From Camelus ferus (Eukaryota): a stretch of 64,000 bases of DNA. Both the position numbers and the translations under genes were made by a program. Location of the stretch: the NCBI RefSeq assembly GCF_009834535.1, contig NC_045712.1, positions 25,854,001-25,918,000 on the forward strand. Reading direction: 5' to 3'. Positions 1,087-58,477 of the stretch are shown here, one piece after another (position 1 is the stretch's first letter; the number at the start of each line of letters is the position of its first letter). Below the pieces are notes generated by a model, which did no database searches, was not told the DNA's origin, and saw nothing but the letters and a program-made list of their open reading frames with translations.

Positions 1087-4000
1087 CACAACAATGGCTT
1101 CTATGGGCACTACAGAGGCCAATTCAAGGGTGAAAGTTCTCGAGAATACCGCCTTGCAGCCAAGCCCCAGCCTCCAGCAGTGTTCCTGCAGCGATGTCAG
1201 GTAAAAGGTGGCCCTGGGGGCAACTAGGGCAGTTGGGCCAGATTCTGCTTCTCTGGCCCCAAGAGCATTATCCTCAGCACCACCACAGCTGGACTGTCAC
1301 AAGGCCAGCCTAGCCCTGGGACTTGCATGAGGCCTGGACCCTCTTCCCCTGAAATGTCAGGTCTTCCCCCTGCAGATAGCATGGAGTAGAGCCAGTACCA
1401 GGCAGTCTTGCTCAGTGCTCCTTCTGCATGGAGGAAGGGTCAGGGCCTAGGTGGGATGGGTGGCCAGAGGGAAAGAGCCTCCAGAACCCAAGAAGTAAGC
1501 CCTGAGCTTTGCCAACAGCTGCCCTTCAGCACAGATTCCTTCATGCGGTGAAAGTCCACTCTAGCTCACAGTCAGCTTTATAGTCCAGGGGCTCAGGAGT
1601 GAGTAGGAGACCTCCTCTGGTCAGGGAGACAGCATTAAAAGTAGCATGTACCCACTCCCATGCCTAGCCAAGGAGGATTGGAAAGTATTGATGGCAAAAG
1701 TGGCCTAGGGTGGCTAGAAAAGGCTTCCAGAAAACAGGAGAGGGATGGAGGGATCCAGGCCCTCCACTACTTCCAGGCCTGGAGACAAGGAGGCACTAGC
1801 ATTAGTCAGAGTCACAACAGTAAAAAGCCCACTCAAAACAGGGGAACTCAGGAGGGTATACATTCAGAAGAGTAGGTTTGGGGCCTCAGGAAAAAGCAGT
1901 CTCACAGGGTGGTAAAACTGAGTTATCAGTACTGCTGGGCCTGAAGGGACAAGGGGAAGGGGGTGCTCCTAGAACCCAGAAGGAGAGAGTCGTGGAGGGG
2001 GTTGGCCTGAGTTGGAGCCAGGAGAAGAAACACCTCCTCCCATCTTCCCTCCATCTTCTTCCAGGGTACCCCAGTGGTCAGAAGGAAGGCAATCTGGGGA
2101 AAAGTGTGCTCAGATAAGACTCCTGGGCTGGATTAGGGTGGAAGAGGGCTAAGGGGGACCTGGAGGTATGCCTGGAACAGGCTCTGCCCACTGCAGCTTC
2201 TTGCTTCCCAGCCTCTAGCCAGGTCCTATTTGGCCACCTGGATTCTCTACAAATTGCTTTCCCAGGCCAAGAGCAGGGTCTTGGAGTCTGCTGTGCTGCA
2301 GAGCCTGAATTTTCTTAGCATGCCAGTTGGAAGGGCTGCCTGGCATAGCCTACTGAGCCAGGCCGAAATGCAGCTCCAGACTGCTCATCCGGGGCTACTC
2401 TCCCTGAGAGAGTGATGAGGTCTGGGTAGTGCAGGGACAGAAGCAACCTGGGGACTTCCTGCTAGGTGTTTGTAGTAGTCCTCAGTGGCAGCTCTCATCC
2501 CAAAGAACCGAATATTCTCTCAATCCGTCCTCCAGGAACAGAGTAGGGGACATATTTGGGCACATGTTTTGATTGAAGACTTGCTACATAAAGCATTTAT
2601 CAGCATTATCAGTAACCCCAAACAGTATGATCTGTGTGTTAGGTTCCGGTTGTACAAATGCCAAGTCTCCTGGCTCTTTCTCGATCGAAAGCTGTTTTAG
2701 TTAGCTGGGCTGCTCAAGGAAGGTGCACATTCTTTTCTCTTATTAGCTGAGAGATACCAGGTGTCAGCTGGCTGATTGTAGCTATTCTTGTTGAAGACCT
2801 TTCCAAGATACAGCATCCACTTTACTTCAGTTTGGAGCAGGTAGAAATTTTGTCATTCAGATGTAAGAAAACTCTTTTTTATTTTTATTCTTCATTTTCT
2901 TTTTAATTTCTTTCTAGCCTTCACCTATCTGACGCTTGGGAAATATAATCCTGATCTTGTTTGTTCTTAAGGTCAGACAAGAGTCCCAGGGGCTTGGTTG
3001 GAGTCAGGTCCCTCATTGGTGGTGCCATGATTGCTGTGTCCCTTTCTCTGCCCCACCCTCCACCACTCCTCAGTCTGCCACAGGGGCTCCTCACTCAGTA
3101 TCCGGCTGACTGCACACTGCCCAGCCTCCACAGGGACCCTTAGCCCTCCCACATGCAAACACTGACCCATCCCAGGAAACCTACCTCTCCTCCAAGACTT
3201 CTTCAGCTGGAACCCCAGCCCAAGCCCCACCTGCTCAGAGACCATGGGTTTTACCACCTCAGTGGAAAAGTAGCCCTTTTTTTTAGAAATAAAGATGCAG
3301 GTGAAATTCTCCTCAGGGACAAGGATACTCAGAACTGCCTGGATAGAGAGGAAATGACTGCACTTTTTACCAGGCTCCCACAGTTGTGAGAATAAAACTC
3401 AAGTCAGTGGGAGTCGATAGATTATCCTGTCACTGTAAGAAGAATGAGTTGCCTGAGTCAGAGCTGCCTCCACATTGTAGGGCTGTGTACAATTTTATAG
3501 CTGAGGATTGAAATGGGGAAGAAATTGGAGGGGTTAATTGGAAGATGTCCCAGACTCCCAGGTTTTTTTAATTGAAATTTTTATTGAGATGATTGTAGAT
3601 TTATAAATAGTTGTAAGAAATAGTATAGAGAGGTCTCTTCTATGCTTTGCCCAGTTTCCTCCAATGGTAACATTTTGCAAATCTATAGTATCATATCATA
3701 ACCAGGACATTGACATTGATGCAATCCACCTATCTCATTCAGATTTCCCCAGTTTAACTTGTACTCACTTATGTGTGTATATCAAGATCTATAAAATCTT
3801 ATCACCTGTGTAGGCTTTTGTAGCCACCACTACAGTCCAGATACTGACCAACATCACAAGGATCCCTGGTCTTGCCCTTTTATGACTGCACCCACCAGCT
3901 TCTCATTCCTCCACTCTTCCCTTGACTCTAATACCTGGCAACCACCAGTCTCTCCTCCATTTCTAAAATTTTGTCACTTCAAAAATGTTATGTAAATGGG

Positions 4001-17232: not shown

Positions 17233-18768
<1,536 letters not shown>

Positions 18769-21700
18769 CTTGTTTGTGGAAACTGAGCCCAACTATCTGT
18801 GTGGCCAGTGGCACAGTGTGCAATGCCCATGGATTCCACAACTCCAAGGACTCCAGGTGCCTCTCCAGGACCCTTTCAGAGACTGGAGGATGTGGGGTGG
18901 GGTGGGCGGGTGGGAGGGGTGGTCTCATGGCGCAATGCACTGTGACTTGTTAGTCTTCAAGTTGTATGTCCACTGTTCCATCTATCACGTTTTATACCTT
19001 TCCACTTCCAGTCTCCCTGCCCACCCTCCATGGTCTTTTTTGCGCGTGGCTGCCAGTAGGCCGGCTTGAGAGCATATGGGAAAATGTCCCCAGGAACAGG
19101 GATGCCAGAGCCTGTCTTGGTAGCCCAGGCAGTTCATTGATGTGAGTGAAATGGCAACTTTCTGGCCCCTGAGGGCAGGGGCAGAGCCGCTCTGAGGTGG
19201 GACACCTCCCCTTGGGGCTGCCCTGGTTTTTTATCCAGATGGGTCCCATGGAGGAGGCTAGTAGGTGGCTCTGTGGGGAATCTTGCAGGCAGCAGGTTTT
19301 TGGGCCAGTGAAGGGGCGGTGTAGACTGCTTGGCCTTGTCTCCCAGCCTGCTCTGGCTGAAACCTTGGGGCTTTGCCTGGGCTTGTCAGGGACAGACTAA
19401 ATTGGCTTAAGTACCCCTGCTCATTCTCCCTTCTTCTCCTTCCAAGAGAGGGACTAGCCTTGACTTACCCAGTTGATGGCAAGGGGTTGTGAGTTGAGTC
19501 AGGGCAGGGTGGCTCTGGGTTGTAGGGGCGGAGTCCTTTCACTGACTAGTTTTCTTGGATGGGTGGGGTAATGTGGTAGCTGAGCTTGGAGAGTGTCCAC
19601 TGCCTCTCAGTGCTTTCTGCCTGGGTTCCAAGTGCTCTGTATTCCCAGGTCCAGCCTCAGCATGCTTTCCAACAGGGGCCTCTGTTTCAGACATTATCGG
19701 TTCTTCTTGGTTTGGAGAGGGGGCAGGGCCCTGAGCCCAGAACAAAACCAGATCCCTGCCCATCTGCCAGTCCTTTGCTGGCTGCCCAGCATGAAAGGCA
19801 GTGGCTGGGGCTGGCGGGGAGGGGGACACATTCCCCAGAGGCTCCTGGAGACGAACAGCCTTTCAGGGCTAGGGATAGAAGCCTCATTTGAATGAGAATC
19901 AGATCTTTTCTGTCTCTGTGGGTTAGTCTGAACCCTGGCCCCACTAGCACCAGCTGCCTTGGATAACGGATCTCTAGAGAAGTTCTGTGTGCTTCCTGGT
20001 GCCCCCCTCCCCACCTTTCTTCTGCATCTGGTGGCTGTTATTAATATCCTTCCCCTGGGCACGGTCACCCTTCGTTGCCGAGGCTCTGGAGACCCCCTTG
20101 CTCCTAGCTACACCATTGCCCAACAATCATGCACACTCCTTGCCTCTGGCAGCCCTACTTTCATCTACCATGTGAATATGGGGAGGAACCTGAGGGCCGC
20201 ATCAGATCCTCAAGGGCAGTCCAGCTGCGGGCCCACTCTACATCCTCTCTCTCAGGCCTGATTCCAGCTCCCACCACTCAGGACCCCCAGCCGGGCTAAG
20301 TGCCCTTCTTTCAGCTCTGCTCTGCTATCACCAGTGGGTAAGAGGTTGTCTCTTTCCCTGAGAGCCATCAGTAGTGGGAGAAGAAATTACCAGGCCTCCT
20401 GGGACGGGGTGAGGTGGGGGATACCCCTAGGATCTCTACTCAGACCCTGCCCCTCCCAGTCCAGGCTTCCAGAACAGTTGCTGAGGAGGTGCCAGACACA
20501 CTTCCTCCTCCTGGCTGCTTCAGTGGCAGCTGCTTCCCACCTACCGGCAACCTGATTATTGGCCATGGCCAGAGGCTTCGAACTTCATCCACCTGTGGGC
20601 TCCATGGCTTTGAACCCTACTGCGTTGTCAGTCACCGACAGGTGAGGAGAAGGGTATGGGCTCTGCAGATGGTATCTGGGTTTTCCTGGGCAGGTGACCC
20701 AGAAAGCCATGGCATTGAAAATGTGGTCTCCCAGAGTGGTCCTGGTGGCAGAAAGACCTGGTGGCAAGAAGAGAGTGGTGAGGGTGCTTGTGTGCCCATG
20801 TGTGCAGGTCTGAGATCTGGGGTCAGGGCCTGGTCACTGACCAACCCTTGTGATTAACAGGTGTTGAGAATGTCACCATCCAGCTGGACCTATAGGGTGC
20901 CTTTTACTTTACCCACCTCATCATGACTTTAAAGGTGACCCAATGCCCCAGCCTAAAGACTTATTCTCTCCCTCCTGACTTCATGGCTACCAGTGATGGT
21001 TGTCCCTGGTGACCCAAGGACCTCCCCTCTGGTCCCCAGACATTCCGCCCAGCAGCTCTGCTCCTTGAACGCTCAGTGGACCATGCCACTCCTGGCATGT
21101 GTACCGCTACTTTGCCCACAACTGCTCAGGCCTCTTTCCTGGGATCCCTCCAGTCCCTGGCCACAGAGTTGGTGACCTCGTCTGTGACCAGCATTACTCA
21201 GATATCGAGCTTTCCACTGAAGGAGAGGTCAGGCCCAGAGGAAGAGGAGTTGGGCCCTGGATTGAAGCCACAAGCTCAGGCTTGCTGCTTCTTCAAAGGT
21301 AATTTTTGCAGTTCTGGATCTGGCCATTCTGGTGGAGAACCCAAACAGCCCCAAGATTCAGGGTAATTATCCACAGGCAGTCCTGTACTTGTGTGTCAGG
21401 AAAACCAGATCTCACTGAGGGGAGGTAGGGTCCTGAATGGGTATGTGCACCAGTTGGGCAGGGTGGCAGGCAAGCCAGCTCAGTCCCCCAAGCATTTTTC
21501 CCCAGCTCTGCCCCATCATGGTCGTCTATTGTGGTCCCTGTTATGGCTCTCCATTTCTGTCCCTTTACTGTTCCCCATACCTGTGCCCAGTGCATACAGA
21601 GTGGCATGGATAGCAGTTTCTCTCTCTGTCCCTTAGCCCTGTTGTTGAATTCCTTTGTGAGGCCCCATTGTGTTGTCTGTCATTTCTCTCCATTCCAGCC

Positions 21701-22239
21701 TAATCTCTGTCCCCCGGCTCTGCTCCTATCACTGTACCTCATAACTCTCCCCTTTGTGAGCCACTGTCACCATCTCCTATTACTGCCCCATCACAGTACC
21801 CTGTCATTGCCTTCCTCCCTCCTTGATTCATTACCCTGGCCATGATTTCATCAAGGATTCAGTTGCCCAATCCCTGAGGCTACCTCCAGGTGGCGCCAGG
21901 GCATCTCCGGGTGTGACCTGTTGTAAAGCAGAAGTCATGTTAAAAGGACAGGAGAGGCAGGACAACCCAGCATGGCAGCCCAGAGCCAGGCCAAGAGAGT
22001 ACCGGAGCAGGAGGACAAACCCTGAACTAGCTTTTTCTCTACACTCTCCACCCACTTTGACTTCAGTTGTTACCAGCTACTCATCCTGAACTTCCACTCT
22101 AGGGCCTAGAGCAGCTGTTTCCTGTTCCCCTAGTCAGGAGAAAGGGGAGCTCTGTTAAAAGAGGGATCCAGGAGGTGGCCTTGGCTTGGTAGTTGACGTA
22201 AGCTGTGTAGAGAAAGAGGAGCATGGACCCATCTCTCTC

Positions 22240-22610
22240 CATATGTGCATTTAACAAGTGCCCATTGAGCCCCACTGTGTGCCAGGTATCTTCTGAGCAG
22301 TGCTCAGTGAGGAGCAGACAGACAAGGTATCGGTCTTGGAGCTGACATAAAAATGAGAAAGGCAGTTGATAAATAAGCAAACAAACATACCTTATGTGGT
22401 TTGGCTGGATAATAAGCTGACTTCTAATTTGAATGATGAGCTGGGGAATGGAATCCTTTTCTACATTGAGGAAGAGGTTTCAGATATCTAGAGGTGCTAG
22501 AAAGGGATGTCTGGGAAGTGGTGAGATGTGCACGTCTCAGCTCAGGAGCGATATCAGGTCTGGAGCAGTGCACAAGTGGAATTATCACCATTAGGCTGTT
22601 CATCCTAGAA
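22240..22610 (-). mobile_element. LINE-2 fragments in a LAMB2L intron
   Basis: TTAACAAGTGCCCATTGAGCCCCACTGTGTGCCAGG...GGAGCTGACA L2 3'-end pattern. Confidence 0.6.
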
Positions 22611-25600
22611 TGGTATGCTCAGGGGAGCATGGGTGCTGGAGGAGGTGGCTGCAATGATGTAGAGAGGAGTGATGCACCCCAAATTCCTCCCCTCCATCCC
22701 AGACATAGAGGGATAACCACCAATGCACCTGAGGTCTCTTGATCTGTGTCTCCAGAGCTCCTGCATGTGACTAACCTCCTGTGAACTTCAAATTGCACAC
22801 ACTGGGTGACAGGCCCCTGGGGGGCCTCAAGGGACAACCCTTCTACTCCTATGCCCTCTATGAGCTTGTGGCCCAAGGCAGCTGCCTGTGCCACGGCCAT
22901 GCCTCAGTGCAGGCCCGCACCTGGGGCCCCAACCAACGTGGAAGACATGGTGAGAACCCTGGGAAGGGCATCCTGTGGCTGGTGGGGTGGGCAAGCTGGG
23001 GCACTGGGGCAGATTCGTCTTGCCCTCCTCCCTCCCAGGTGCATGGCCTTTGTGTCTGCCGCCACCACACAGCTGGGCCCCACTGTGAGCGCTGCCAAGA
23101 CCTGCACCAGGACCACCCAAGGCAGGCAGCAGAGCCTGAGCACCCCAACACCTGCTGGGGTAGGTGCCATGCCCTACTCTGCCTGGCCATACTTGCCATG
23201 GTCAGCCCACTCCATATCAACCTTCCTTGTTTGCCCCAGAATGTGAGTGCCATGGGCATGCCCGCAGTTGTCACTTTGACATGGCCCTGTATCTTGCATC
23301 TGGCAATGTGAGTGGAGGTGTGTGTGATGCATGTCAGCACAACACAGCTGGGTGCCACTGTGAGCTCTGTCAGCCCTTCTTCCACCGAGATCCCGGGGAG
23401 GATCCCTGCTCCCTTCACTCCTGCAAACGTGAGCCCTCCAACTCCCAGTTCCAGTCCTGACCCTGATCCTTCAGCTTCATGGTGAACTCTGACCTGACTC
23501 TGTTCTCACTTCTGACCCCTGATCCAGCCTATTACTGTGACCATATGGGTGCTCTGGAAGGGGGTTTGTGTGATACCCACACAGATGAAACCCAGGGCCT
23601 CCTTTCTGGGCAGTGTCGTTGCAAAGTTCATATCAGCGCTGTGACTCCTGCCAGCCTGGTCACTATCGCCTGGGCCCCACCCAGTCAGGGGGCTGCCAGC
23701 ATGAGTGACCCTCCGAGTGGACCCCTACTCCCATGTCCTCCTCGGTTCTCCCCCCTGATTATTGCCCTAGTAACATGGGCACCCACCTACCCCTGCAGCA
23801 GTCCCATTAGCATCCTGATAGCCCTGTGCCTTAGTCTGCAGGTACGATCCCTGGGGGCCAAGTCCCTGGCGTGTATGCCTGTGATCCCCGCAGTGGTGCC
23901 TGTCGTTGCACACGGTTTATCTCTGGATGGGACTGCAGCCATTGTCTGGTGAGGCTTGACCCACCTTCTGATCTTTGGTTTTGGGTGCTGAGCTTCTAAA
24001 AGCTGTCAAGCACAAGACTATAATCTGGGTGACTATAGACTGAGCCTTGCAGGTGGGTTGGTGTCACTTACCGACCTGGTCACCAGACTCGGCACCACCT
24101 TGGCTAGCTGTTTGAAGGAACACTGAGTGCATCTCCTTCTTGCCTTTCCTTGAATATTACAAATCTTTTACTTAACTTTTATTTTGACCCTGGCTGTATC
24201 CTTATCGTCTTTCCTCTTACGTCTTCTCCGCAAAGCCATGCAGGAGTACACCAGGGTCTCCTCTCCCCCTCTCAGCCAGAGGCAGAAGAGCATTCAAGCC
24301 CTGCACTCACCCTCCTTCTTCCTGCAACAAGCAGTCCCAGCATACAAGACCTCCCAACCCCTGACCCTTCTCTCCTTGCTCAGATCTTCCTTTACTTCCT
24401 CCATCCACCTGCTCTCTCTTGTAGCCCGAGTTCTGGGATCTGAGCACTGACTCTCTAGGCTGTCGGCCCCTTGACTGTGACTTTGGGGGTGCCTACAGCA
24501 ACAGGTATAAGGCAGGGCCTGGGGGTTTGGATCAAGTGGAAAGAATGGGGAGTTGACTCTGTCCCCTCCCTATCCCCACACTGGTCCAGGTGTTCCGTAG
24601 GGGAGGGCCTCTGCCTGTGCCGCCCCCACTTCCATGGCTGCCGCTGCCATGAACTCCAATCTGGGTATTTCTGTGCTGCCCTGGACCAAGCCACTGCTGA
24701 AGCCGAGCTGGGTCAGGGCCTCCAGCCTGATGACCCCCGGCTACCTGTGAGTGTCTAGGAAGGGCAGAGGCAGGGAGGGGTAGGAGGAAGTCAAGGCTCA
24801 CACCTTGGGGCTCAGGAGAGGGAGTGAGTGTCCAGAGAGTGCTAGTTGGAGGAAGAGGCTGGACAGGGTTAGGAAAGTGAGGAAGTCCAGGTGGAGCAGC
24901 GTCAGCATGGTCAGAAGTTTGATGTCTTGGACAGAGCTGATATTCCCAGGACAGTGTGTGAGAAGACAGGGCTAGAGTTTTGGAGGTACTGACACACAAC
25001 TTGCCCCCAGGGAGGCCCCTGGAATGCTCCCCACTGTACACAAGCCCCAGGGACCTCCCCTACTTGGCTCTGGCCCTGACTTCGGAGACAGCATGACCCT
25101 CGATGTGTCCTCCACCCTGCCAGGCGAGCCCATTACAGCCACCATCTACCCAAGGTGAGAAGTATGAGGAACGGGTTGGGTCACAGGTCACTAGCTCTTA
25201 GTAGGGACGAGGCCTAAGAACTGGGAATATGAGTCCCTGGGGGTCTTAGAGGAATGGGAACCTAAATCCTGAGGGTCCTAGGTCCTGGAGTAGATGGTCT
25301 GGGCCTGGGAATCTGTGTCTCACATCCAGGCCCTAAAGGAGCCCTGCCTCTGCATCAGGGAACTGGCTGTGCATTGTGGCCTGGCTTGGACTTTGCATGT
25401 GTGGGTGATGCTGCTGGCCTCTCTCTGCTGGCACCCGCAGCACCTCGGGTCCTAGAATATAACATTGTCCTGTGCTATGAGACCCTGGTCAGTGGCGTGG
25501 GTGCCAGGCAGGTGGAAGGGTGGTGCTGGGTGGTATGTGGGGGCAGCTCTATGACTGCTGACCCCTAACCCTAGGCACCTGGAAACTGGCAGGCATTAGT

Positions 25601-28600
25601 CAGTGTCCGTGCCCAATCCCAGCCTAGCAGTACCCGCTGCGCCCATCTGCTGCCCTCAGAACAGCTGTTCCAGGCGACCTTGACCCATGCATACAGGTAG
25701 GCAGGACCCTGTGGCCCCCAATACAAGACTCTATTATGTTACCAATACATTTGAAATAATACCCAAATGAAGTGGAAACCCTGCAGTATGATAAATCATG
25801 TCACAGAATAATCAAAATATGGACCTAATTTAAAACAGAGGGATTTAAGAACTTGTTTTTTTTCCACTGATCGTATGGACCCCATATCTGCACAATGGAA
25901 ATGGGGCATTCTTAGGACTACACGATAGTGGCCTTCTTACCCACCCTTACTCCTCTGCCCTCTCCCTGCAGAGCTGTGGTTCTATCCAGACCTTTCTGCT
26001 TTGAACCCAGAACCCACTACTCTGTGACCCTGTGGCTGTGGCAGACCAAAGGGGTGCAGAGGCCTGAGGGGGGCACCATCCTTCTGGATTCAGTAAGATC
26101 TTAGGGGCTCCACCCCATATCTGGGGGAGACACAAATTATAGCAGGACATTATTGGATGCAGTGGGCCCGGGGGACGGGGTGGTGGAGGCCTAGAATTGC
26201 ACCAAGAGGACTGAGACAGGTGGAGAGTGTAGGGAAGGGGATCCTGGCAGGAAGAGCACATGGCAAGGATAGAAGGTGAGGTACCAGACTTCACAGGGCC
26301 TTGTGGGCCAGGAGAGGGCTTATCCTTGGTCAGTGCAGAGCCATGGAAGAAATATGAGCAGGGAAGAGACATGGGGAGAATGGATTGTTAGGGGAAGGCT
26401 GCTGCAGTGATTGAGTGAGAGGTGGCATTGCCTGGACTAGATTGGAGCCATTGAAGAGGAAGGAGAAACAGACTCAAAAGAGAAACAGAAAAGGAGCGAG
26501 AAGAGGCTATGAAGGCCAACGTAAGGAAGTTACAGCAGTATAGGTGTTAGTGCGTGGGGCAGGGGTCACTTCCCCTGCCGACACCCTCAACCTACCAGAT
26601 TGTGCTCCTGCCACGGGTGAAAGAGTTGCCTGGGCTGAGATCCGTGGACCCTGGGGCCACAGGGAGCTCCACAAGGCGGGCTGCATGGAGGCAGTGAGGA
26701 TGGGCCCCTCTAGCACCAGGCCTGAGGCCTGTGCCCACCTTGCTTGCAGCATCTAGGCCCTGCTCCATGGGGGCGACCTCGGTGAGTGTGTGGCCCTGGC
26801 TTGAGGGATCTGAAGCATAGGGATTGCAGGAGGCACCATGAGGTTCATCTCATCTTGCCTTTTCCTGGCAGCATGTGAGTGCCATCCCCAGGGTTCACTG
26901 AGCACCAAGTGTGCCCTGCTGGGTGGGCAGTGTCCCTACCATCCTAATATCATTGATTGTAGCTGTGACCACTATGTGCCTGGAATGTATGGCTTCAACC
27001 CCACTGGCTGCAGTGTTGAGCCTTCAGGGCCAGTGGGTGTTGGTGTAGGGTCTGGGACCAGCCATCTCCTTTCTCTACATGGCTTGATTGCCCTGTCATT
27101 TCCCAGAGTGCCACTGCCACACTGAGGGTGCCACCAGTGCCATCTGTAACCCTATGAGTGGGCAGTGCCCATGCCAGGCTGGCTTTGCTGGTCTCCGCTG
27201 TGACCACTGCCTCTCTGGCTGGTGGGGCTTCCCTCACTGCCAGCCCTGTGCCTGCAATGGTCATGCTGAGTTGTGCCACCCACTCACAGTCGTCTGCCAG
27301 GACTGCCATGAAGCCACCATGGACCGGCACTGTGACAGGTCAGGCTGACATTGGAAGGGTTGGGGAGGAATTATGGTGAGTGGGCTAGTCCCCATTCTGT
27401 GTGCTCATGCCCCCAGGTGCTTGGATGGCTACTACGGAGACCATACCCTGGGCTCAGGCCAGCAGTGCCAGCCTTGCCTCTGTCCTGGGCAACCTGGCTC
27501 AGGCCTCTACCATGGGATTTCCTGCCATGTGGACAGTGCAAGTGGCCGTGTCCTGTGCCTCTGTGCACCTGGCTATGCAGGTGAGGCGCTGCTGGCAGTG
27601 ACAAACCATGGCCCTGCTCACTTGTTCACAATCCCATCAGATCCACAAGGGAAATCTTTACCAGTGCCCTCTGTATGTAGAGCTGCAGGCTGGGCACCTC
27701 TCCTCAAGAAGTTGCTGTTCTTGAGAAATTATAGGCATGGAACTTGTAAGTCAAGAAGATGGACCATAATGTAGCTATTGTGTCCTCTGCCCTCCTGGCT
27801 GGATCTCAGACTTTCTGGCTGGTTAAGTGGGACTCAGAGGCCCCAAGGGTATAGGAAGATAACTGAGACAACCCACACATATCCCAATCTTCCCCAGGCC
27901 CCCGCGGTGTCCGCTGCTCCTCTGGCTACTTTGGGCGCCCTTGGCCAGGAGGAGACCCCAGGAGGAGTCCGTACTGGCCCTGCCAGTGCAACAACAATAT
28001 TGATCCCTGTGACCCTGCTGCTTGCGATCCCCACAGTGGGCACTGCCAGCACTGTTTCCAGTACAGCCATGGCCCTGGCTGTGCACACTGTAGGCCTGGC
28101 TTCCATGGCACTGCCCTGTGCCCAGGGGGCTGCCGGCGTGAGTGTGTGGGTGGGATGGGTGGGGGCATCCCAAGGTGGATAGATAGGTTCTTTTTCCTCA
28201 GACCTTGTCAAGCCCTTCCTCTTCCCAGGCTGCCGCTGTAACCCCCAGGGCACCATCCCTGTGAGGTGCCCATCTGGGGCTGAAGCCTGCTTCTGCAACC
28301 AGGTCAGCGGGCAGTGCCCCTGCTGCCCCACACACTGGGGCAGGACTGTAGCTTCTGTGCCCCGCCTCTTCTGGAATCTGGGAGGGCCCCGAGGCTGCAA
28401 ACCCTGCAGCTGCCATGCCCGACACACTTTGCAGCCAGTGTGTCACCCAGTGAGTGAACCCATGTTGCAGGTAGCATGTGGCAGCAGCCAGGTGTGAGTG
28501 AATGTGTGTGCCTGTGACAGGTGTGATTTATGGCTGGTTAAAGTGTTAATGTGATCACCAGCCGGGGTGTGTGTGGCTGCAAATAGCCGTGTCTATGCTC

Positions 28601-31554
28601 TTGTGTGACATTAACTGTGAGCAGACTCGAGATTGCATGGGCCCGACCCCACTCGCAGCCATGCATTAGTGTGTGGGTGAACCACAATGAGTGGGTCATG
28701 ACAAGTGGAATGAGCGTGGGCTCAGGAGAGGGGGCAGAGGGTGAGGACTGAGAGCTGGCACAGGCAGAGACGGATGGCCTTGGGAAGCGCATGTTTCCGG
28801 GAGGAGCCTGGTCAGTGACTGAACAAGATGATGTCTGAAGCATGTTCTTGTGTCCTTGAGGAGGAGAGGGTGGGTGTTGGGGGGTGAAGGAGGCATGGGT
28901 TGAGAGTGTGGAGACAGTGGGGTGCTCGACTCAGGACACTGAGGAACAAAGGGTAGCAGGTCAGGAGTTGAGAACTTGGAGGGCCAGTCTGTGAGGGGCG
29001 AGGCTAGCAATATGGGAAGGTGGGGACTGGTCAAGGGGTCAGGTTGGAGGAGGCAGGAGGGAGAAGCCCTCAGCCAAGCACAGGTGTGGTGCTGCCTCTG
29101 AGCACTCATGTCCTTCTCCCTCCCCTAGAAGAGGCTCTTTGTTTCTGACTGGTCGTATTCCTTCCCCTCAGGTCACCGGTCAGTGCCCCTGCTGGGCAGG
29201 ATTTGGGGGCCGCACATGCTCCCCGTGTCAGGATGGGTACTGGGGTGACCCAGAGCAGGAGTGCAGAGATGAGCAGGCTGCTCACACAATCCCCCGCCAG
29301 GGGTGAGGCTGCCCTGATGGGGCCCTCAGTGTAGGGGAGCAGGGGAGCAACTGGGTGATCCTGGGGGAGAGCACAGTGTGTTTATTGCTGTTTCCTCCAA
29401 AACTTAATGAAATACTCATGAAAACAGCTGTAGGAAAAAAGCGTTGGCCAGGCTAGGTCAGGTATGTCTGCAGAGAGGACACGTTGGTGGCTCTTTCCTG
29501 ACCCTACCTTGCCGTCTTGACCCTAGCTGACCCCTGACCAGTCTGCAAAGCCCCTAGAGCCCAGTGCCTTCCTGCCCCAAGGCTGCCATGCAGTATGGCC
29601 TCTTTGGCCAAGGTAGATGCCCGTGCCCATGGCCGTTCTGGACAGTGGCTTGTGTGAGGACCTTTACAGTCACACAGGGCCGTTTTCTTCCTTCAGACTT
29701 CTTGGAGGCGAGGCTCCGGTGAATGCTGCCTGCTTCCTTCCCTAACCCTGTCTCTCCCCCGCAGCCTGTGCCTGTGACCCCCAGGGCTCCATTGCACCAG
29801 CTGTGACCCACACACAGGCGCCTGCCACTGCAAACAGGGCATCTCAGAGTGAGATGCCAAGCATGTGCCCGTGGCTCCAGAGGTGGCTTTGCACAGTGCA
29901 CGTCCTGCCCTCCCTGTTTCACCTCCTGGAATCAACACCTGGCTCTGCTCCAGCTGCAGCTAGACGTAGTGGCCCGGGAGGTGGCTACCCTCTGTCAGGG
30001 GATGCCTGGCTGGGGTACCAGGGGCCAGGGAAGACACTTGCAGGCCCTGGAGGGGATACTCCAGCAGGCACAGATGCTCCTGGAATCTCCCTCCCCCACT
30101 GTGGGGCCCCTGCAACAACTTGCAGAGTGGATAGCTGGACTCAGGCAAGGGGTCTGGGGCCAGTAGGGAGGCGATCTCCAGCTAGCTTCCCAGGTCAAGG
30201 ACTCAGAGGGTCACAGGTTGGCCTATCTGACTCCTGGGTTTGGAAGTGAGGGGAGTTTTCTTGAGTGAGGAATTGGGGAGGAGAGGGCATCTCTGGCCAG
30301 GCTGTTGATACTCCATCTTCCCATAGGAGGAAGACAATTGCATTGGCCCAGACATTGTGGGCCACCAAACAGGTTGTTGTAGAAAGAGAGCCATGGGTTA
30401 ATGGGCAGTGTGAATGTCTTAAAAGAATTATCCCAGGAGCTAGACTGTGTCAAGGGCTTGGCCTGGCCCAAGAAGGCCACAGGAGCCCAAGGTGAGGCCA
30501 GGTGGGCAGGTGGGTGAGCAGCAGGTGAGGGGAGGGGCTAGACTGGGGCAGAGGAAGGAAAAGGGTGCCGTTGCTTACATATCTGGGGGACCCAGGAGGC
30601 CCATGGACCCTGCCTCAGCCACTGGAGCCCTGAGCTGCTCCTCTGTCCAACCTTCCCATTCCCTGCAGATGCTGAGGCCCAGGCCTATTCAGCTGCCCTT
30701 CTTCCCCAAGAGGTCATACGTGGACCCCAGATTATGGCAACACCTGGAGGACCAGACAGCATCCTGAGACAGGCCCGAGAGGCTTGGTGGTGGACTGAGC
30801 AGCTGCTGTAGGGGTTGGGCCATCAAAGGGATAGCTGTGTGGCAGCTGAAATTGGAGGGGCTGGTCAACAGGGTCCAGAGTCTACACCCACAGCTTCTGA
30901 GACTCCTAGTCAAGCTGGAGTGGTGGGTGGAGATATGGATCACTGTGGGAAGTTTTGCCAAGACAAGGACTCTCTCCTAGGGGTAAACTGGGTGTAGGGC
31001 GATGGGAGATCTGGGACATGCATTCCTCACTGGATCCCCTATCTTGTTGGCAGGAATGCACGGGTTGGGGACCTGGGCTGGCCTGTGTTCCTATGCCCTG
31101 TGTTGTTCCCTCTTGTCCCAGAACCCTGCCCACCACCCAATGGGCTCTGGTTGCCTCTTGTAACTCCTCTTATAGCCTGGACCTAGCAGTCACAACTTCG
31201 GAGCGGTGTCAGCAACTGGTACAGAGCCATGGGGGCCATGGAGGGGAACATGGGGGAAGTCATAGGGTATCATGGCTTGACCATGGGGTTGCAGGAGAAA
31301 CATTCCACGTCTGATCTGCCCCTACCAGCTACTGCAAATCCAGGCCACTGCAAGCTCTATGGGAATCCAGGCCCAGAAGATGTGGCGTCATATAAGGGGG
31401 TCCAGGGGTGTGGCCACTGTGGCTCATGTGCAAGCAACTGTTCAGACTGTCCAGCATTCCCTCTTGGGTACATATCTGCTAGTTGTGTGTCTGAGGGCAG
31501 GGGCAGGTGGGCATCCAGGACCTGTTATAATACTCCTAGAATTAAGAATACTCA

Positions 31555-31771
31555 GTGGGTGGGAAGGGACTGGGATTTCAAAATGTAGAATAGATAAACA
31601 AAATTGTACCGTGTAGCACAGGGAAATATATACAGGATCTTGTGGTGGCTCACAGCGAAAGAGAATGTGACAATGAATGTATGTATATTCATGTATAACT
31701 GAAAAAATGTGCTCTACACTGGAATTTGACACAACATTGTAAAATGACTATAACTCGTTAAAAAAAAAAGA
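31555..31771 (+). mobile_element. 5'-truncated young LINE-1 3' end with poly(A) and target-site duplication
   Basis: About 215 nt ending in an A-run, flanked by the direct repeat AAGAATACTCA (31544-31554 and 31772-31782) at a TT/AAGA L1-endonuclease-type site. Confidence 0.85.
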
Positions 31772-31859
31772 AAGAATACTCATCAGGGTTGACCAAGGGT
31801 CAGGTGGGAGCACTAGTTTTCTATTAAATGTTTGGCAAGTCAGGGTTGGGGGTCAGGAG

Positions 31860-32000
31860 GAACTGATTTGTAGTGTTTGTCAATTTCCAGTGGAAGGAAT
31901 CCCCCCGTGGCTGATTTCAGTCTACCTATCATTTAACAGTTGGTTCGCAAAATTCTTGAAAATTTGACAATTGGTTCTTGGAAGCCTCCAGCATACCATG
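31860..32000. mobile_element. Possible DNA-transposon (MER-type) remnant
   Basis: GGTTCGCAAAATTCTTGAAAATTTGACAATTGGTTC...CTCCAGCATACCA resembles a MER-type terminus from memory; the family was not identified. Confidence 0.35.
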
Positions 32001-34199
32001 TAGTCATGTTAGAGGCAGGATCAGTGAGAGGTTAGGGTCAAGGTTCGTTGGGTCAGGGATCAGAATTCATGTCCAGGGTCCCTACCTCCATCCCTACAGA
32101 TGAAGGTGCAGATGCTATGAGTGTGGAGCTGGTGGCATGGCGTGGGCTGGCGGTGCCTCTCCCCCGAGGTGGAACAGCAGGCATTGCCCTGCTGGATCAG
32201 ATCCAGGGTGCCTGCCCTGTACCAGATGTCATAGGCCAGGAACTGCCCAGAGCTGAAGGTGTCCTCCATCAGGCACAGCAGACCAGGTGAAGGGCAAGGA
32301 GGCTGGATGTAGAGGTCAGAGGGTGGGGAAGAAAGGGATGCCCAACTGATCATCTGTGCCCTTCAGGGAGGGTATAGTCAGGGCCCAGGACCAAGCACTG
32401 GATGTTCAGGGTGTGCTGGCTGAGGCGGGAACTCATGCAAGAGCTATAGAGCAAGGGCTGCAGGTGGTGAAACAGAGACTTCAAGGCCTGGAAGCCAGTA
32501 TACAGGAGGTGATACCCCACCCAAACCCCTCAGCTCCCTCACACCTCTTGTTCAGAGGCCACTGTGATCCCTGTTCTCCACCTGAAATGTTTGACCCACT
32601 GTGATACTATGGTGCTACCAAATACCCTGACCATGTGAACACTTTACTTAGTTGCTACCCTAATGTGACCTCTCTGTGATCCCCTGACCTTTGCCTCAGG
32701 TGGCAGGGCTACTGGCCTGGGTGGCTCTGGAAGTGGATGTGACCCCAGTCCTGGGGCGTTTGTCCAGTGCAGCTGTGGCTCTCAGGACCCTTTTGGCCCT
32801 GAGTCAGCTGCAGGCCCAGGAGGCAGAAGAGCAGGCAGCACATGCCTTGGGCATGGCTGGGAGCCTGAACAAGATGAGATGGGAAAAGTGGACATTAGAA
32901 TCTCAGGGACACCTCTGGAACAGTGTGAAGTGGGGTTTAGGCTGGGACTGGACTGTGCTGGGCTGAAGCAGGATCTCAGTTCTAAAAGCCCCTGCCCCCC
33001 AGGAACCTTGGGCAGCAATGTGTTTGGGACAGTAGGGTCTAGGTGGGGTGGGGTTTCAGATCCAGTCCTGCTCTAGGAGTTGCAGGTGTCCCAGTTAGGT
33101 GTGACAGAGTTGCAGGAGGGCACGTCTAGCCTGGTGATTATGGTGCAGGATGTAGGAGAGCGGGTACAGCGGGAATGAGCTGAGGCTCAAGAGCTGCTAA
33201 AGCTGGCACAGAACAGCTGGAGCCACCTGGAGGGTGCATGGCTGTGCCATGGTGGGGAGAGTACAGGGGCAGGATCAGGGTCAGAAGGGAGGGTCAGAGT
33301 CACAAGGGTGGTGTAGGAGGGTCAGGGCTGGGTCCAGGTCAGGTCCAGCTTCATGTAGGGATCAGGCTGCGGACAAAGTTCAGAACAGAGGGTCAAATGT
33401 TGACTAGGGTTAGAGCTCATTTAAGACTGGGGTCAGAGTCAGGCCGTGACAGAGATGAGGACCAGGGTCAGAGATGAGGGCCAAAGGTCAGAGCCTGGCT
33501 CAGATGACCTTGATCCCCAGGCTTGGAGCACCACCTGGCACAGAACGAGCAGGCACTGGGCAAGAAGGTGGCCACCCTGTGGACCCTGGAGCAGCAGGCA
33601 GTAGAGCTGCTTGAGGACACGTAGCTGTGGGCCAATGCGTATGCCACCTGCTGACTGCTGTCTATGGATGCCAGTAAGAGGGACTCTGGGACTGCTTGGG
33701 TGACTCAGAGTGACCAGAGTGGCCCAGGAATCTCCTGACCTTGAGAGACCAGAGACACCACTGAGTGGCTCCCCCATCCTGAGCCCCAGGAGACACCATG
33801 ATGTCTTCCAGTGGCCCTCTGACCTTGAGAAACCTGAAACATCATGTAAAACTCCCTAAGGCCATCGAGTGCCCCAAGACCCTGATAGATCCTTATCTTT
33901 AAGTGATCTAAGGTTCTGAGCCACCTCTAGTATCCCTGAGCCCCTCAGGTGGACTATGTGACCCTCAGGGTGACTGGAGATCTCTACTCCAGATAACTGG
34001 TGTAACTCCCAGCAACCCTGGAAGTCCAACAGATTGACTGCCTCCTGATTTCCCTGAAGAACCCCCAGCTTTCTCCCCTGGGCCAGCAGCTCCGGGGTAC
34101 TCTCCACTCGACCCCAGACAGAAAGTGGGTGCAGCTGTGGCAGCTCAAAGTCATCCTGACATGGCCCTACAGTCCCACAGAGTGCCTGGTCCTGCCGCT

Positions 34200-35190: not shown

Positions 35191-47013
<11,823 letters not shown>

Positions 47014-49195: not shown

Positions 49196-57930
<8,735 letters not shown>

Positions 57931-58329: not shown

Positions 58330-58477
58330 NNNNNNNNNNNNNNNNNNNNNNNNNNNNNNNNNNNNNNNNNNNNNNNNNNNNNNNNNNNNNNNNNNNNNNN
58401 NNNNNNNNNNNNNNNNNNNNNNNNNNNNNNNNNNNNNNNNNNNNNNNNNNNNNNNNNNNNNNNNNNNNNNNNNNNNN
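58330..58477. other. Assembly gap (148 N), probably hiding the alternative USP19 terminal exon
   Basis: Run of N between the two USP19 poly(A) signals. Confidence 0.9.

Follow-up and report, generated by a model that had tools for sequence, protein, structure and literature searches.

Positions 20112-33654 on the forward strand of the 64,000-nucleotide (nt) stretch of Camelus ferus DNA analyzed here (contig NC_045712.1; "the window" denotes this whole stretch) are, with high confidence, an unprocessed laminin beta chain pseudogene devoid of protein-coding function: the dead orthologue of the vertebrate gene for "laminin subunit beta-2-like", LAMB2L (lamb2l in fish, LAMB2P1 in human), born of an ancient duplication and then subject to old neutral decay in its own lineage. 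We propose that LAMB2L would have arisen by duplication before LAMB1 and LAMB2 split and would since then have kept its slot immediately 5′ of LAMB2, in the same orientation. Selection on the LAMB2L protein would have stopped long ago in the window lineage, with neutral drift since then leaving exons and introns in place as stops, frameshifts, splice-site mutations, and cysteine losses accumulated.

An unprocessed pseudogene with all 34 coding exons

All 34 coding exons are present in order, with introns retained, and the pseudogene is for this reason classed as unprocessed; a processed pseudogene was considered and rejected, since such a copy would be intronless and at a new site, whereas this one has introns and a syntenic location. 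Exons were located, from 20257 to 33651 of the window, by DNA alignment to the intact exons of Dama dama, and a protein-to-genome spliced aligner allowing introns, frameshifts, and non-canonical jumps was used, with junctions then set by the deer-exon DNA alignment. The 33 intron positions agree with those of the living genes in deer and bat (Rhinolophus sinicus), one intron being down to 30 nt, and exon lengths equal those of deer and bat wherever the window copy is undamaged. Introns at ancestral positions and multiple disabling mutations, the marks of an unprocessed pseudogene, are thus found together in the window.

The remains are those of a complete laminin beta chain. Pfam Laminin_N exceeds its gathering score on both 20510-20647 (E 1.9e-6) and 21087-21233 (E 1.7e-8), and the pseudogene aligns through the LN domain of the Rhinolophus LAMB2L protein (P0157). 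LE repeat blocks are split by an LF domain: EGF_laminin is above threshold on three pieces, and the decayed LF piece, on which LAMININ_IV_B scores weakly (16 bits, cutoff 27), belongs to a region collinear with the exons that encode the LF domain in deer and bat (PF21199 in both proteins). The C-terminal coiled coil, beta knob, and terminal Cys are covered by exons 25-34, which match the coiled-coil part of P0157 and include cysteine-rich exon 28 and the final YATC.

The neighboring LAMB2 is built of the same domains in the same succession (LN, LE, LF, LE, coiled coil with knob, C-terminal Cys), and many of its exons agree with those of the pseudogene in length and phase. When 20-34 kb of the window was compared with 34-64 kb by blastn and tblastx, 20510-29935 gave a series of collinear matches to LAMB2 at 35434-44306, with the best pseudogene exon reaching 85.6% DNA identity. 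Together with the ordered exons and the terminal YATC followed by TGA, this bears out an earlier note on this DNA, which had described an exon-by-exon LAMB2 paralogue running through to YATC and a stop. The ten exon lengths that it gave as equal to those of LAMB2 (74, 64, 121, 189, 80, 144, 232, 164, 97, and 142 nt) all hold against our LAMB2 model; the 144-, 97-, and 173-nt lengths in the pseudogene are reached through homology only, because the donors of those exons are mutated.

Disabling lesions and neutral evolution

Six in-frame stops stand in the homologous frame (TAG 20893, TGA 25077, TAG 26754, TAG 30809, TGA 33176, and TAG 33622), and there are at least 14 frameshifting indels: -1 at 21084 and 22779, -2 at 22905, -7 at 23633, +1 at 23848, -1 at 25341, -10 at 26660, -1 at 28325, +1 at 28364, -1 at 29792 and 29849, +1 at 30419, -2 at 30821, and -1 at 30911. 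The variable first coding exon contributes a net -1 besides these, and there are in-frame deletions at 20700 (9 nt), 22788 (3 nt), and 25032 (3 nt). Four splice donors are destroyed (23701 AT, 27016 TT, 29269 AT, and 32874 AT), and intron 2 has collapsed from 159 nt to 30 nt (20642-20671), losing its acceptor. Finally, of the 128 cysteine positions that deer and bat have in common, 9 carry another residue in the window, as against 2 (deer) and 1 (bat) in the reciprocal controls.

The four stops that had been listed previously (TAG 20893, TAG 26754, TGA 33176, and TAG 33622) are all present in the homologous frame, and the three exons of aberrant length trace to single indels: 188 instead of 189 nt at 21040 (the 1-nt deletion at 21084), 173 instead of 180 nt at 23528 (the 7-nt deletion at 23633), and 114 instead of 113 nt at 23835 (the 1-nt insertion at 23848). 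The cysteine losses also reported there are real in light of the controls above, and to these lesions we add TGA 25077, TAG 30809, 11 further frameshifts, the four donor losses, and the intron 2 collapse.

It could be argued that LAMB2L is still functional here and that the lesions are assembly or sequencing errors, given that no exon is missing, the terminal stop and the divided start codon persist, 29 of 34 donor sites survive (the conserved GC of intron 25 included), and the orthologues are functional in related orders. We consider this extremely improbable: there are some 25 independent disabling changes of different kinds, among them the 7- and 10-nt deletions and stop-creating substitutions; nine conserved disulphide cysteines are replaced; the adjacent LAMB2 is flawless in the same assembly; and substitutions unique to this lineage fall equally often on each of the three codon positions.

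This last point emerges from 1766 aligned codons, analyzed by pairwise methods in three taxa (window, deer, and bat). Lineage-unique changes at codon positions 1/2/3 number 109/141/128 in the window, a flat spectrum, as opposed to 106/101/210 in deer and 75/53/159 in bat, both with an excess at third positions. The ratio of nonsynonymous to synonymous rates (dN/dS) is 0.28 (NG86) to 0.34 (YN00) between deer and bat LAMB2L, and 0.59 (NG86) to 1.0 (YN00) on the window branch as obtained by three-taxon decomposition. Deer and bat LAMB2L are under purifying selection and the window copy has evolved neutrally on its own branch, a combination expected of a pseudogene with constrained orthologues, and we conclude that coding constraint ended early on the private branch of the window lineage. 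The indel load, about 20 in 5.4 kb on a branch with a dS of 0.08-0.12, is in rough agreement with such an early end.

A dead protein gene might nevertheless live on as a transcribed non-coding RNA or a regulatory element, by analogy with human LAMB2P1, which, as the earlier note had stated, is annotated at this position; RefSeq lists it as non-coding RNA NR_004405, and RNA-seq has detected it (PMC5707042). The window copy retains its first-exon donor and the majority of its splice sites, and the 5′ exon has the same distance from CCDC71 as in live genes (1.3 kb). Against this, four donors and one intron are broken, changes are even over codon positions, and, between the window and deer or bat, exon similarity exceeds that of short introns by only 2.7-2.8 points (4.8 for deer vs. 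bat), with no sign of constraint of any kind in those comparisons. We hold survival in a non-coding role to be quite improbable.

Conserved position and living orthologues

The gene order on the + strand of the window is CCDC71 - LAMB2L pseudogene - LAMB2 - USP19, and the pseudogene thus occupies the slot, between CCDC71 and LAMB2 and on the same strand as both, that characterizes LAMB2L orthologues. The CCDC71-LAMB2L-LAMB2 arrangement recurs in Dama dama (L001) and Rhinolophus sinicus (L002), where LAMB2 starts about 1.4 kb 3′ of LAMB2L, likewise in the window; the 5′ exon of the pseudogene is separated from CCDC71 by 1.3 kb, the spacing also found where the gene is alive. A position upstream of LAMB2 agrees not only with deer and bat but also with bichir and swift.

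When the best-preserved exon was searched against the library, most matches were single-exon fragments of open reading frames, and the only useful lead was P0007, a marsupial "laminin subunit beta-2-like" whose relatives are full-length proteins. These LAMB2L relatives come from sharks, teleosts, coelacanth, amphibians, reptiles, birds, platypus, and marsupials and, among placentals, from bats, ruminants, hippopotamus, tenrec, and elephant shrew; annotated proteins appear intact in marsupials, platypus, ruminants, hippopotamus, bats, and tenrec. The automatic names given to them are inconsistent (beta-1, beta-1-like, beta-2, beta-2-like, beta-4, and beta-4-like, with beta-3 in Xenopus tropicalis), which conceals the LAMB2L family in databases.

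The pseudogene is 79% identical to the Rhinolophus LAMB2L protein over 34 exon blocks, and its protein identity to deer and bat LAMB2L is 74-79%, vs. about 50% to the neighboring LAMB2 protein. The Dama dama (P0162) and Rhinolophus sinicus (P0157) proteins match their genomes at 100%, with no stop or frameshift; the intact gene has 34 exons in deer and 35 in the bat model, its introns are all GT-AG except for one conserved GC-AG, and exon lengths are the same in deer and bat in 32 of 34 exons. Both share with the window the same neighbors, 34 coding exons, the GC-AG intron, and the split ATG, but are intact and under purifying selection, whereas the window copy is broken and neutral. Since deer and bat LAMB2L are intact and constrained, the loss is lineage-specific. 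The earlier proposal that a lost mammalian protein could be reconstructed from this DNA does not survive: intact LAMB2L persists in other mammals, as the exact genomic matches and the purifying selection in deer and bat attest. Two further loci were set aside, namely L003 as a close relative for a shared-lesion test, it being the LAMB2L of another placental with only 78% DNA identity, and L004 as a LAMB2L, it being LAMB2. The fragment clusters considered in looking for such relatives derive solely from Logan run assemblies, with ENA as a second source for one of them.

No primate, rodent, carnivore, horse, pig, camel, or whale protein is among the LAMB2L relatives listed. Although this is absence of evidence, the missing placental groups suggest further losses, because any placental orthologue would outscore the fish matches that are listed.

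Placement within the laminin beta family

To place the pseudogene we built a tree of 56 sequences (LG+G4, quick search, Shimodaira-Hasegawa-like approximate likelihood ratio test supports), comprising the two laminin genes of the window, LAMB1, LAMB2, LAMB4, LAMB2L, cyclostome sequences, and one long-branched nematode outgroup. It resolves four jawed-vertebrate clades, and the pseudogene falls within LAMB2L, apart from LAMB1, LAMB2, and LAMB4. The LAMB2L clade spans sharks to placentals with a support of 100, and the pseudogene sits inside its placental part, adjacent to the deer sequence; in a tree restricted to mammals it joins hippopotamus and ruminants (97/97), so that both gene trees place the window lineage near Cetartiodactyla. 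The window LAMB2 lies inside mammalian LAMB2, beside that of Cervus. LAMB1, LAMB2, and three cyclostome sequences form a group with a support of 95, with LAMB2L outside.

A forced LAMB2 + LAMB2L clade is 135 log-likelihood (lnL) units worse and is rejected by the approximately unbiased (AU) test (p-AU 3e-119); with the cyclostome sequences allowed in, it is 94 lnL units worse and again rejected. As the tree and the AU test both reject this clade, the divergence of LAMB2 and LAMB2L is older than the LAMB1/LAMB2 split, which accords with the earlier suggestion of an anciently diverged beta chain lineage that includes fish lamb2l. LAMB2 itself is sister to LAMB1, not to LAMB2L; it lacks exon 14, has another exon structure in its coiled-coil part, and evolves, judging from branch lengths, about half as fast as LAMB2L in mammals.

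These results bear directly on whether the pseudogene is instead a recent, mammal-specific tandem duplicate of LAMB2 that has since decayed. It adjoins LAMB2 on the same strand, ten of its exons have LAMB2 lengths, and one exon is, as noted, 85.6% identical in nucleotides; yet its protein identity to LAMB2 is only about 50% vs. 74-79% to deer and bat LAMB2L, it nests with LAMB2L from shark, fish, frog, and bird, it contains exon 14, which LAMB2 is without, and its coiled-coil exons are differently organized. A recent duplicate is refuted by the tree and the AU tests, the nearest relative not being LAMB2, and we assign it virtually no probability. Retained introns, the LAMB2L clade, and the AU rejection instead uphold the earlier assignment as an unprocessed pseudogene that is no recent LAMB2 copy; it does not group inside mammalian LAMB2, the placement that the same note had named as fatal to its proposal.

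In teleosts, lamb2l stands in tandem with lamb2 and the pair has been attributed to the teleost genome duplication (PMC9504374), an origin contradicted by our 56-sequence tree. Teleost lamb2l belongs to the same clade as the pseudogene but is functional, with about 46% identity to mammalian LAMB2L, and zebrafish Lamb2l protein has been detected by mass spectrometry in skeletal matrix (PMC3946537); the coding zebrafish gene cited in the earlier note is therefore real and of the same clade as the window gene.

It was also observed that the LAMB2L stems of mammals, therians, and placentals are long (0.24, 0.32, and 0.27 changes per site, respectively, vs. 0.12 and 0.20 for two comparable LAMB2 stems) and that LAMB2L was already fast-evolving, with a dN/dS of about 0.3, before any loss. 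Among the cyclostomes, a hagfish protein of 3843 residues (P0149, "laminin-like protein epi-1") combines a beta-type LN domain, about five tandem copies of an LE-repeat block of about 200 residues, and a beta-type C-terminal half; the tandem blocks are either a real expansion or a mis-assembly.

A probably old loss in the window lineage

Human LAMB2P1, formerly LAMB2L, is likewise a laminin beta pseudogene with introns, located between CCDC71 and LAMB2 at 3p21 and immediately 5′ of the latter, but in another species and, to judge from the species distribution, with a separate inactivation. It is said to have been first described, as LAMB2L, by Durkin et al. in 1999. Within the paper library searched, we found nothing on the evolution of LAMB2L/LAMB2P1 in tetrapods.

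Because bats, ruminants, and afrotherians with intact copies separate the two lineages on the mammal tree, the loss in the window lineage was probably independent of that in human, assuming that LAMB2P1 is the human orthologue. The loss would be old, filling most of the private branch and reaching back tens of millions of years, and the conserved single-copy synteny suggests that the pseudogene is unitary.

Several points weigh against an old, unitary loss. The placement near Cetartiodactyla is based on a sparse sampling of Laurasiatheria; the NG86 estimate of 0.59 leaves room for a later inactivation than YN00 implies; the part of this genome that was read is the 64-kb window; and single lesions could in principle be assembly errors. 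For the lesion set as a whole, assembly error is very unlikely, because there are about 25 independent lesions and the codon-position spectrum is flat.

An unprocessed LAMB2-like pseudogene upstream of LAMB2 being already known in human, the window holds its counterpart in another placental, and the object itself adds little. What matters more is its family. Laminin biology generally counts four mammalian beta chains, and we know of no described function, tissue, or partner chains for the fifth, LAMB2L, which livestock species and bats retain intact and under selection (with deer and bat as the two genomes checked). The family is a natural experiment in which repeated independent losses of a basement-membrane gene can be compared with retained copies, and it is equally a test case for an origin of beta chains from a tandem pair followed by genome duplication.

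Exon 14 and a possible kinship with LAMB4

Exon 14 had been noticed earlier as having no LAMB2 counterpart, and this is borne out: with a length of 147 nt in deer and bat, it is an ordinary LAMB2L exon that comes after the first LE block and before the LF domain and aligns with window positions 25011-25154, as expected of an orthologue. Its basic insert, with an RLRRQR-like motif, is found in all 18 other aligned LAMB2L sequences from shark to mammal. An insert occupies the corresponding alignment position in LAMB4, and LAMB1, LAMB2, and the nematode chain are without one; LAMB4 and LAMB2L may share the insert as a derived character.

LAMB4 resembles LAMB2L in position too, lying upstream of LAMB1 as LAMB2L does of LAMB2, and both pairs are in tandem in teleosts (PMC9504374). 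LAMB4 is nevertheless a separate clade with a support of 100; its grouping with LAMB2L is weak (support 64), and the alternative that places LAMB4 outside all others is not rejected (p-AU 0.29). Because of the shared insert, the parallel tandem order, and this weak grouping, the sequences suggest that an ancestral tandem pair was duplicated whole, yielding LAMB4-LAMB1 and LAMB2L-LAMB2. Fused public models were also seen, of LAMB2L with LAMB2 in Polypterus and Chaetura and of LAMB4 with LAMB1 in Coregonus and Columba (P0274, P0168, P0273, and P0275); they are annotation errors, yet evidence of same-strand adjacency.

On balance we lean slightly toward a broader proposal, in which LAMB2L is misnamed and would be the genome-duplication twin of LAMB4, an upstream gene with the basic exon and a downstream gene without it having been duplicated together. 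LAMB2L would then be a fifth beta chain, live in ruminants, bats, some afrotherians, marsupials, and monotremes, that died independently in several placental lineages, including those of the window and of human. If this is true, the textbook count of 11-12 mammalian laminin genes is one short for cattle, sheep, and deer, and unknown laminin trimers may exist in these animals.

Exon-by-exon structure

All features below are on the + strand. The 5′ exon (20112-20171; 5′ limit approximate), identified by alignment with the bat first exon and with ACCAT|GTGAGT of Dama, ends in the AT of a split start codon (ACCAT|GTGAAT) and keeps its GT donor. The start codon is intact but divided by intron 1, with AT at 20170-20171 and G at 20256. 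The deer LAMB2L model (L001, about 3001-3086) begins exactly at this split codon (ACCAT|GT...AG|G), and the bat model has 16 extra residues that begin at an upstream ATG, in place of which the window has ACC at 20112.

Coding exon 1 (20256-20337), which carries the G of the ATG and the signal peptide, has a 3-nt insertion and a 4-nt deletion relative to Dama. The LN domain starts in exon 2 (20460-20641; 182 nt as in the orthologues, with the Laminin_N match at 20510-20647), which is followed by the intron 2 remnant (20642-20671; 30 nt vs. 159 nt in Dama, acceptor now TG) and by exon 3 (20672-20777), with its 9-nt in-frame deletion; through the shrinkage of intron 2, exons 2 and 3 are nearly fused in the DNA. 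Exon 4 (20861-20934, 74 nt) contains TAG 20893, and exon 5 (21040-21227, 188 vs. 189 nt) the deletion at 21084 and the second Laminin_N match (21087-21233). Exon 6 (21299-21362) has 64 nt, and exon 7 (22756-22949) has 194 nt instead of 200 after deletions of 1 nt at 22779, 3 nt at 22788, and 2 nt at 22905. Exon 8 (23039-23159, 121 nt) precedes exon 9 (23240-23428, 189 nt), the best-preserved LE exon. Exon 10 (23528-23700, 173 vs. 180 nt) combines the 7-nt deletion at 23633 with a GT to AT donor change at 23701, and exon 11 (23835-23948, 114 vs. 113 nt) bears the insertion at 23848; exons 12 (24425-24504, 80 nt) and 13 (24590-24746, 157 nt) follow.

Exon 14, the basic insert (25011-25154), is 144 nt long vs. 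147 and contains TGA 25077; exon 15 (25330-25487, 158 vs. 159 nt) carries the 1-nt deletion at 25341. After exon 16 (25575-25696, 122 nt) comes exon 17 (25972-26092, 121 nt), which belongs to the LF or laminin IV type B region and has the weak LAMININ_IV_B match. Exon 18 (26599-26781, 183 vs. 193 nt) has lost 10 nt at 26660 and acquired TAG 26754, and exon 19 (26872-27015, 144 nt) ends at a donor changed from GT to TT at 27016. Exons 20 (27107-27338, 232 nt), 21 (27417-27580, 164 nt), and 22 (27898-28137, 240 nt) are succeeded by exon 23 (28229-28449, 221 nt), in which a 1-nt deletion at 28325 and a 1-nt insertion at 28364 occur, and by exon 24 (29172-29268, 97 nt), with its donor changed from GT to AT at 29269.

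Exon 25 (29765-30144, 380 vs. 382 nt), with 1-nt deletions at 29792 and 29849, is followed by the GC-AG intron, at 30145-30326 in the window (donor GCAAGG), 13799-13978 in L001, and about 14173-14352 in L002; this rare splice type is kept across window, deer, and bat and is still recognizable in the pseudogene. Exon 26 (30327-30491, 165 vs. 164 nt) has the insertion at 30419, and exon 27 (30669-30922, 254 vs. 257 nt) has deletions of 2 nt at 30821 and 1 nt at 30911, with TAG 30809 in the homologous frame. The L-beta knob region with its cysteines is encoded by exon 28 (31054-31218, 165 nt), after which come exons 29 (31329-31467, 139 nt), 30 (32100-32286, 187 nt as in bat, vs. 190 in deer), 31 (32367-32508, 142 nt), and 32 (32700-32873, 174 nt, donor GT to AT at 32874). 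Exon 33 (33077-33233, 157 nt) includes TGA 33176, and exon 34 (33521-33654) includes TAG 33622 and terminates in YATC followed by TGA at 33652-33654.

Neighboring genes

Upstream, the CCDC71 coding open reading frame lies at 17242-18768 (+; Pfam PF15374, E 2.7e-174). Downstream, LAMB2 is intact at 35200-47013 (+), with 32 coding exons, all introns GT-AG, and no stop, as modeled by spliced protein-to-genome alignment guided by true LAMB2; it is 93.8% identical to Cervus LAMB2. USP19 follows LAMB2 on the + strand, with USP19_linker and UCH domains at 51888-52694 (Pfam), and runs of N at 56553-56684 and 58330-58477 fall within the USP19 gene region, outside the pseudogene.

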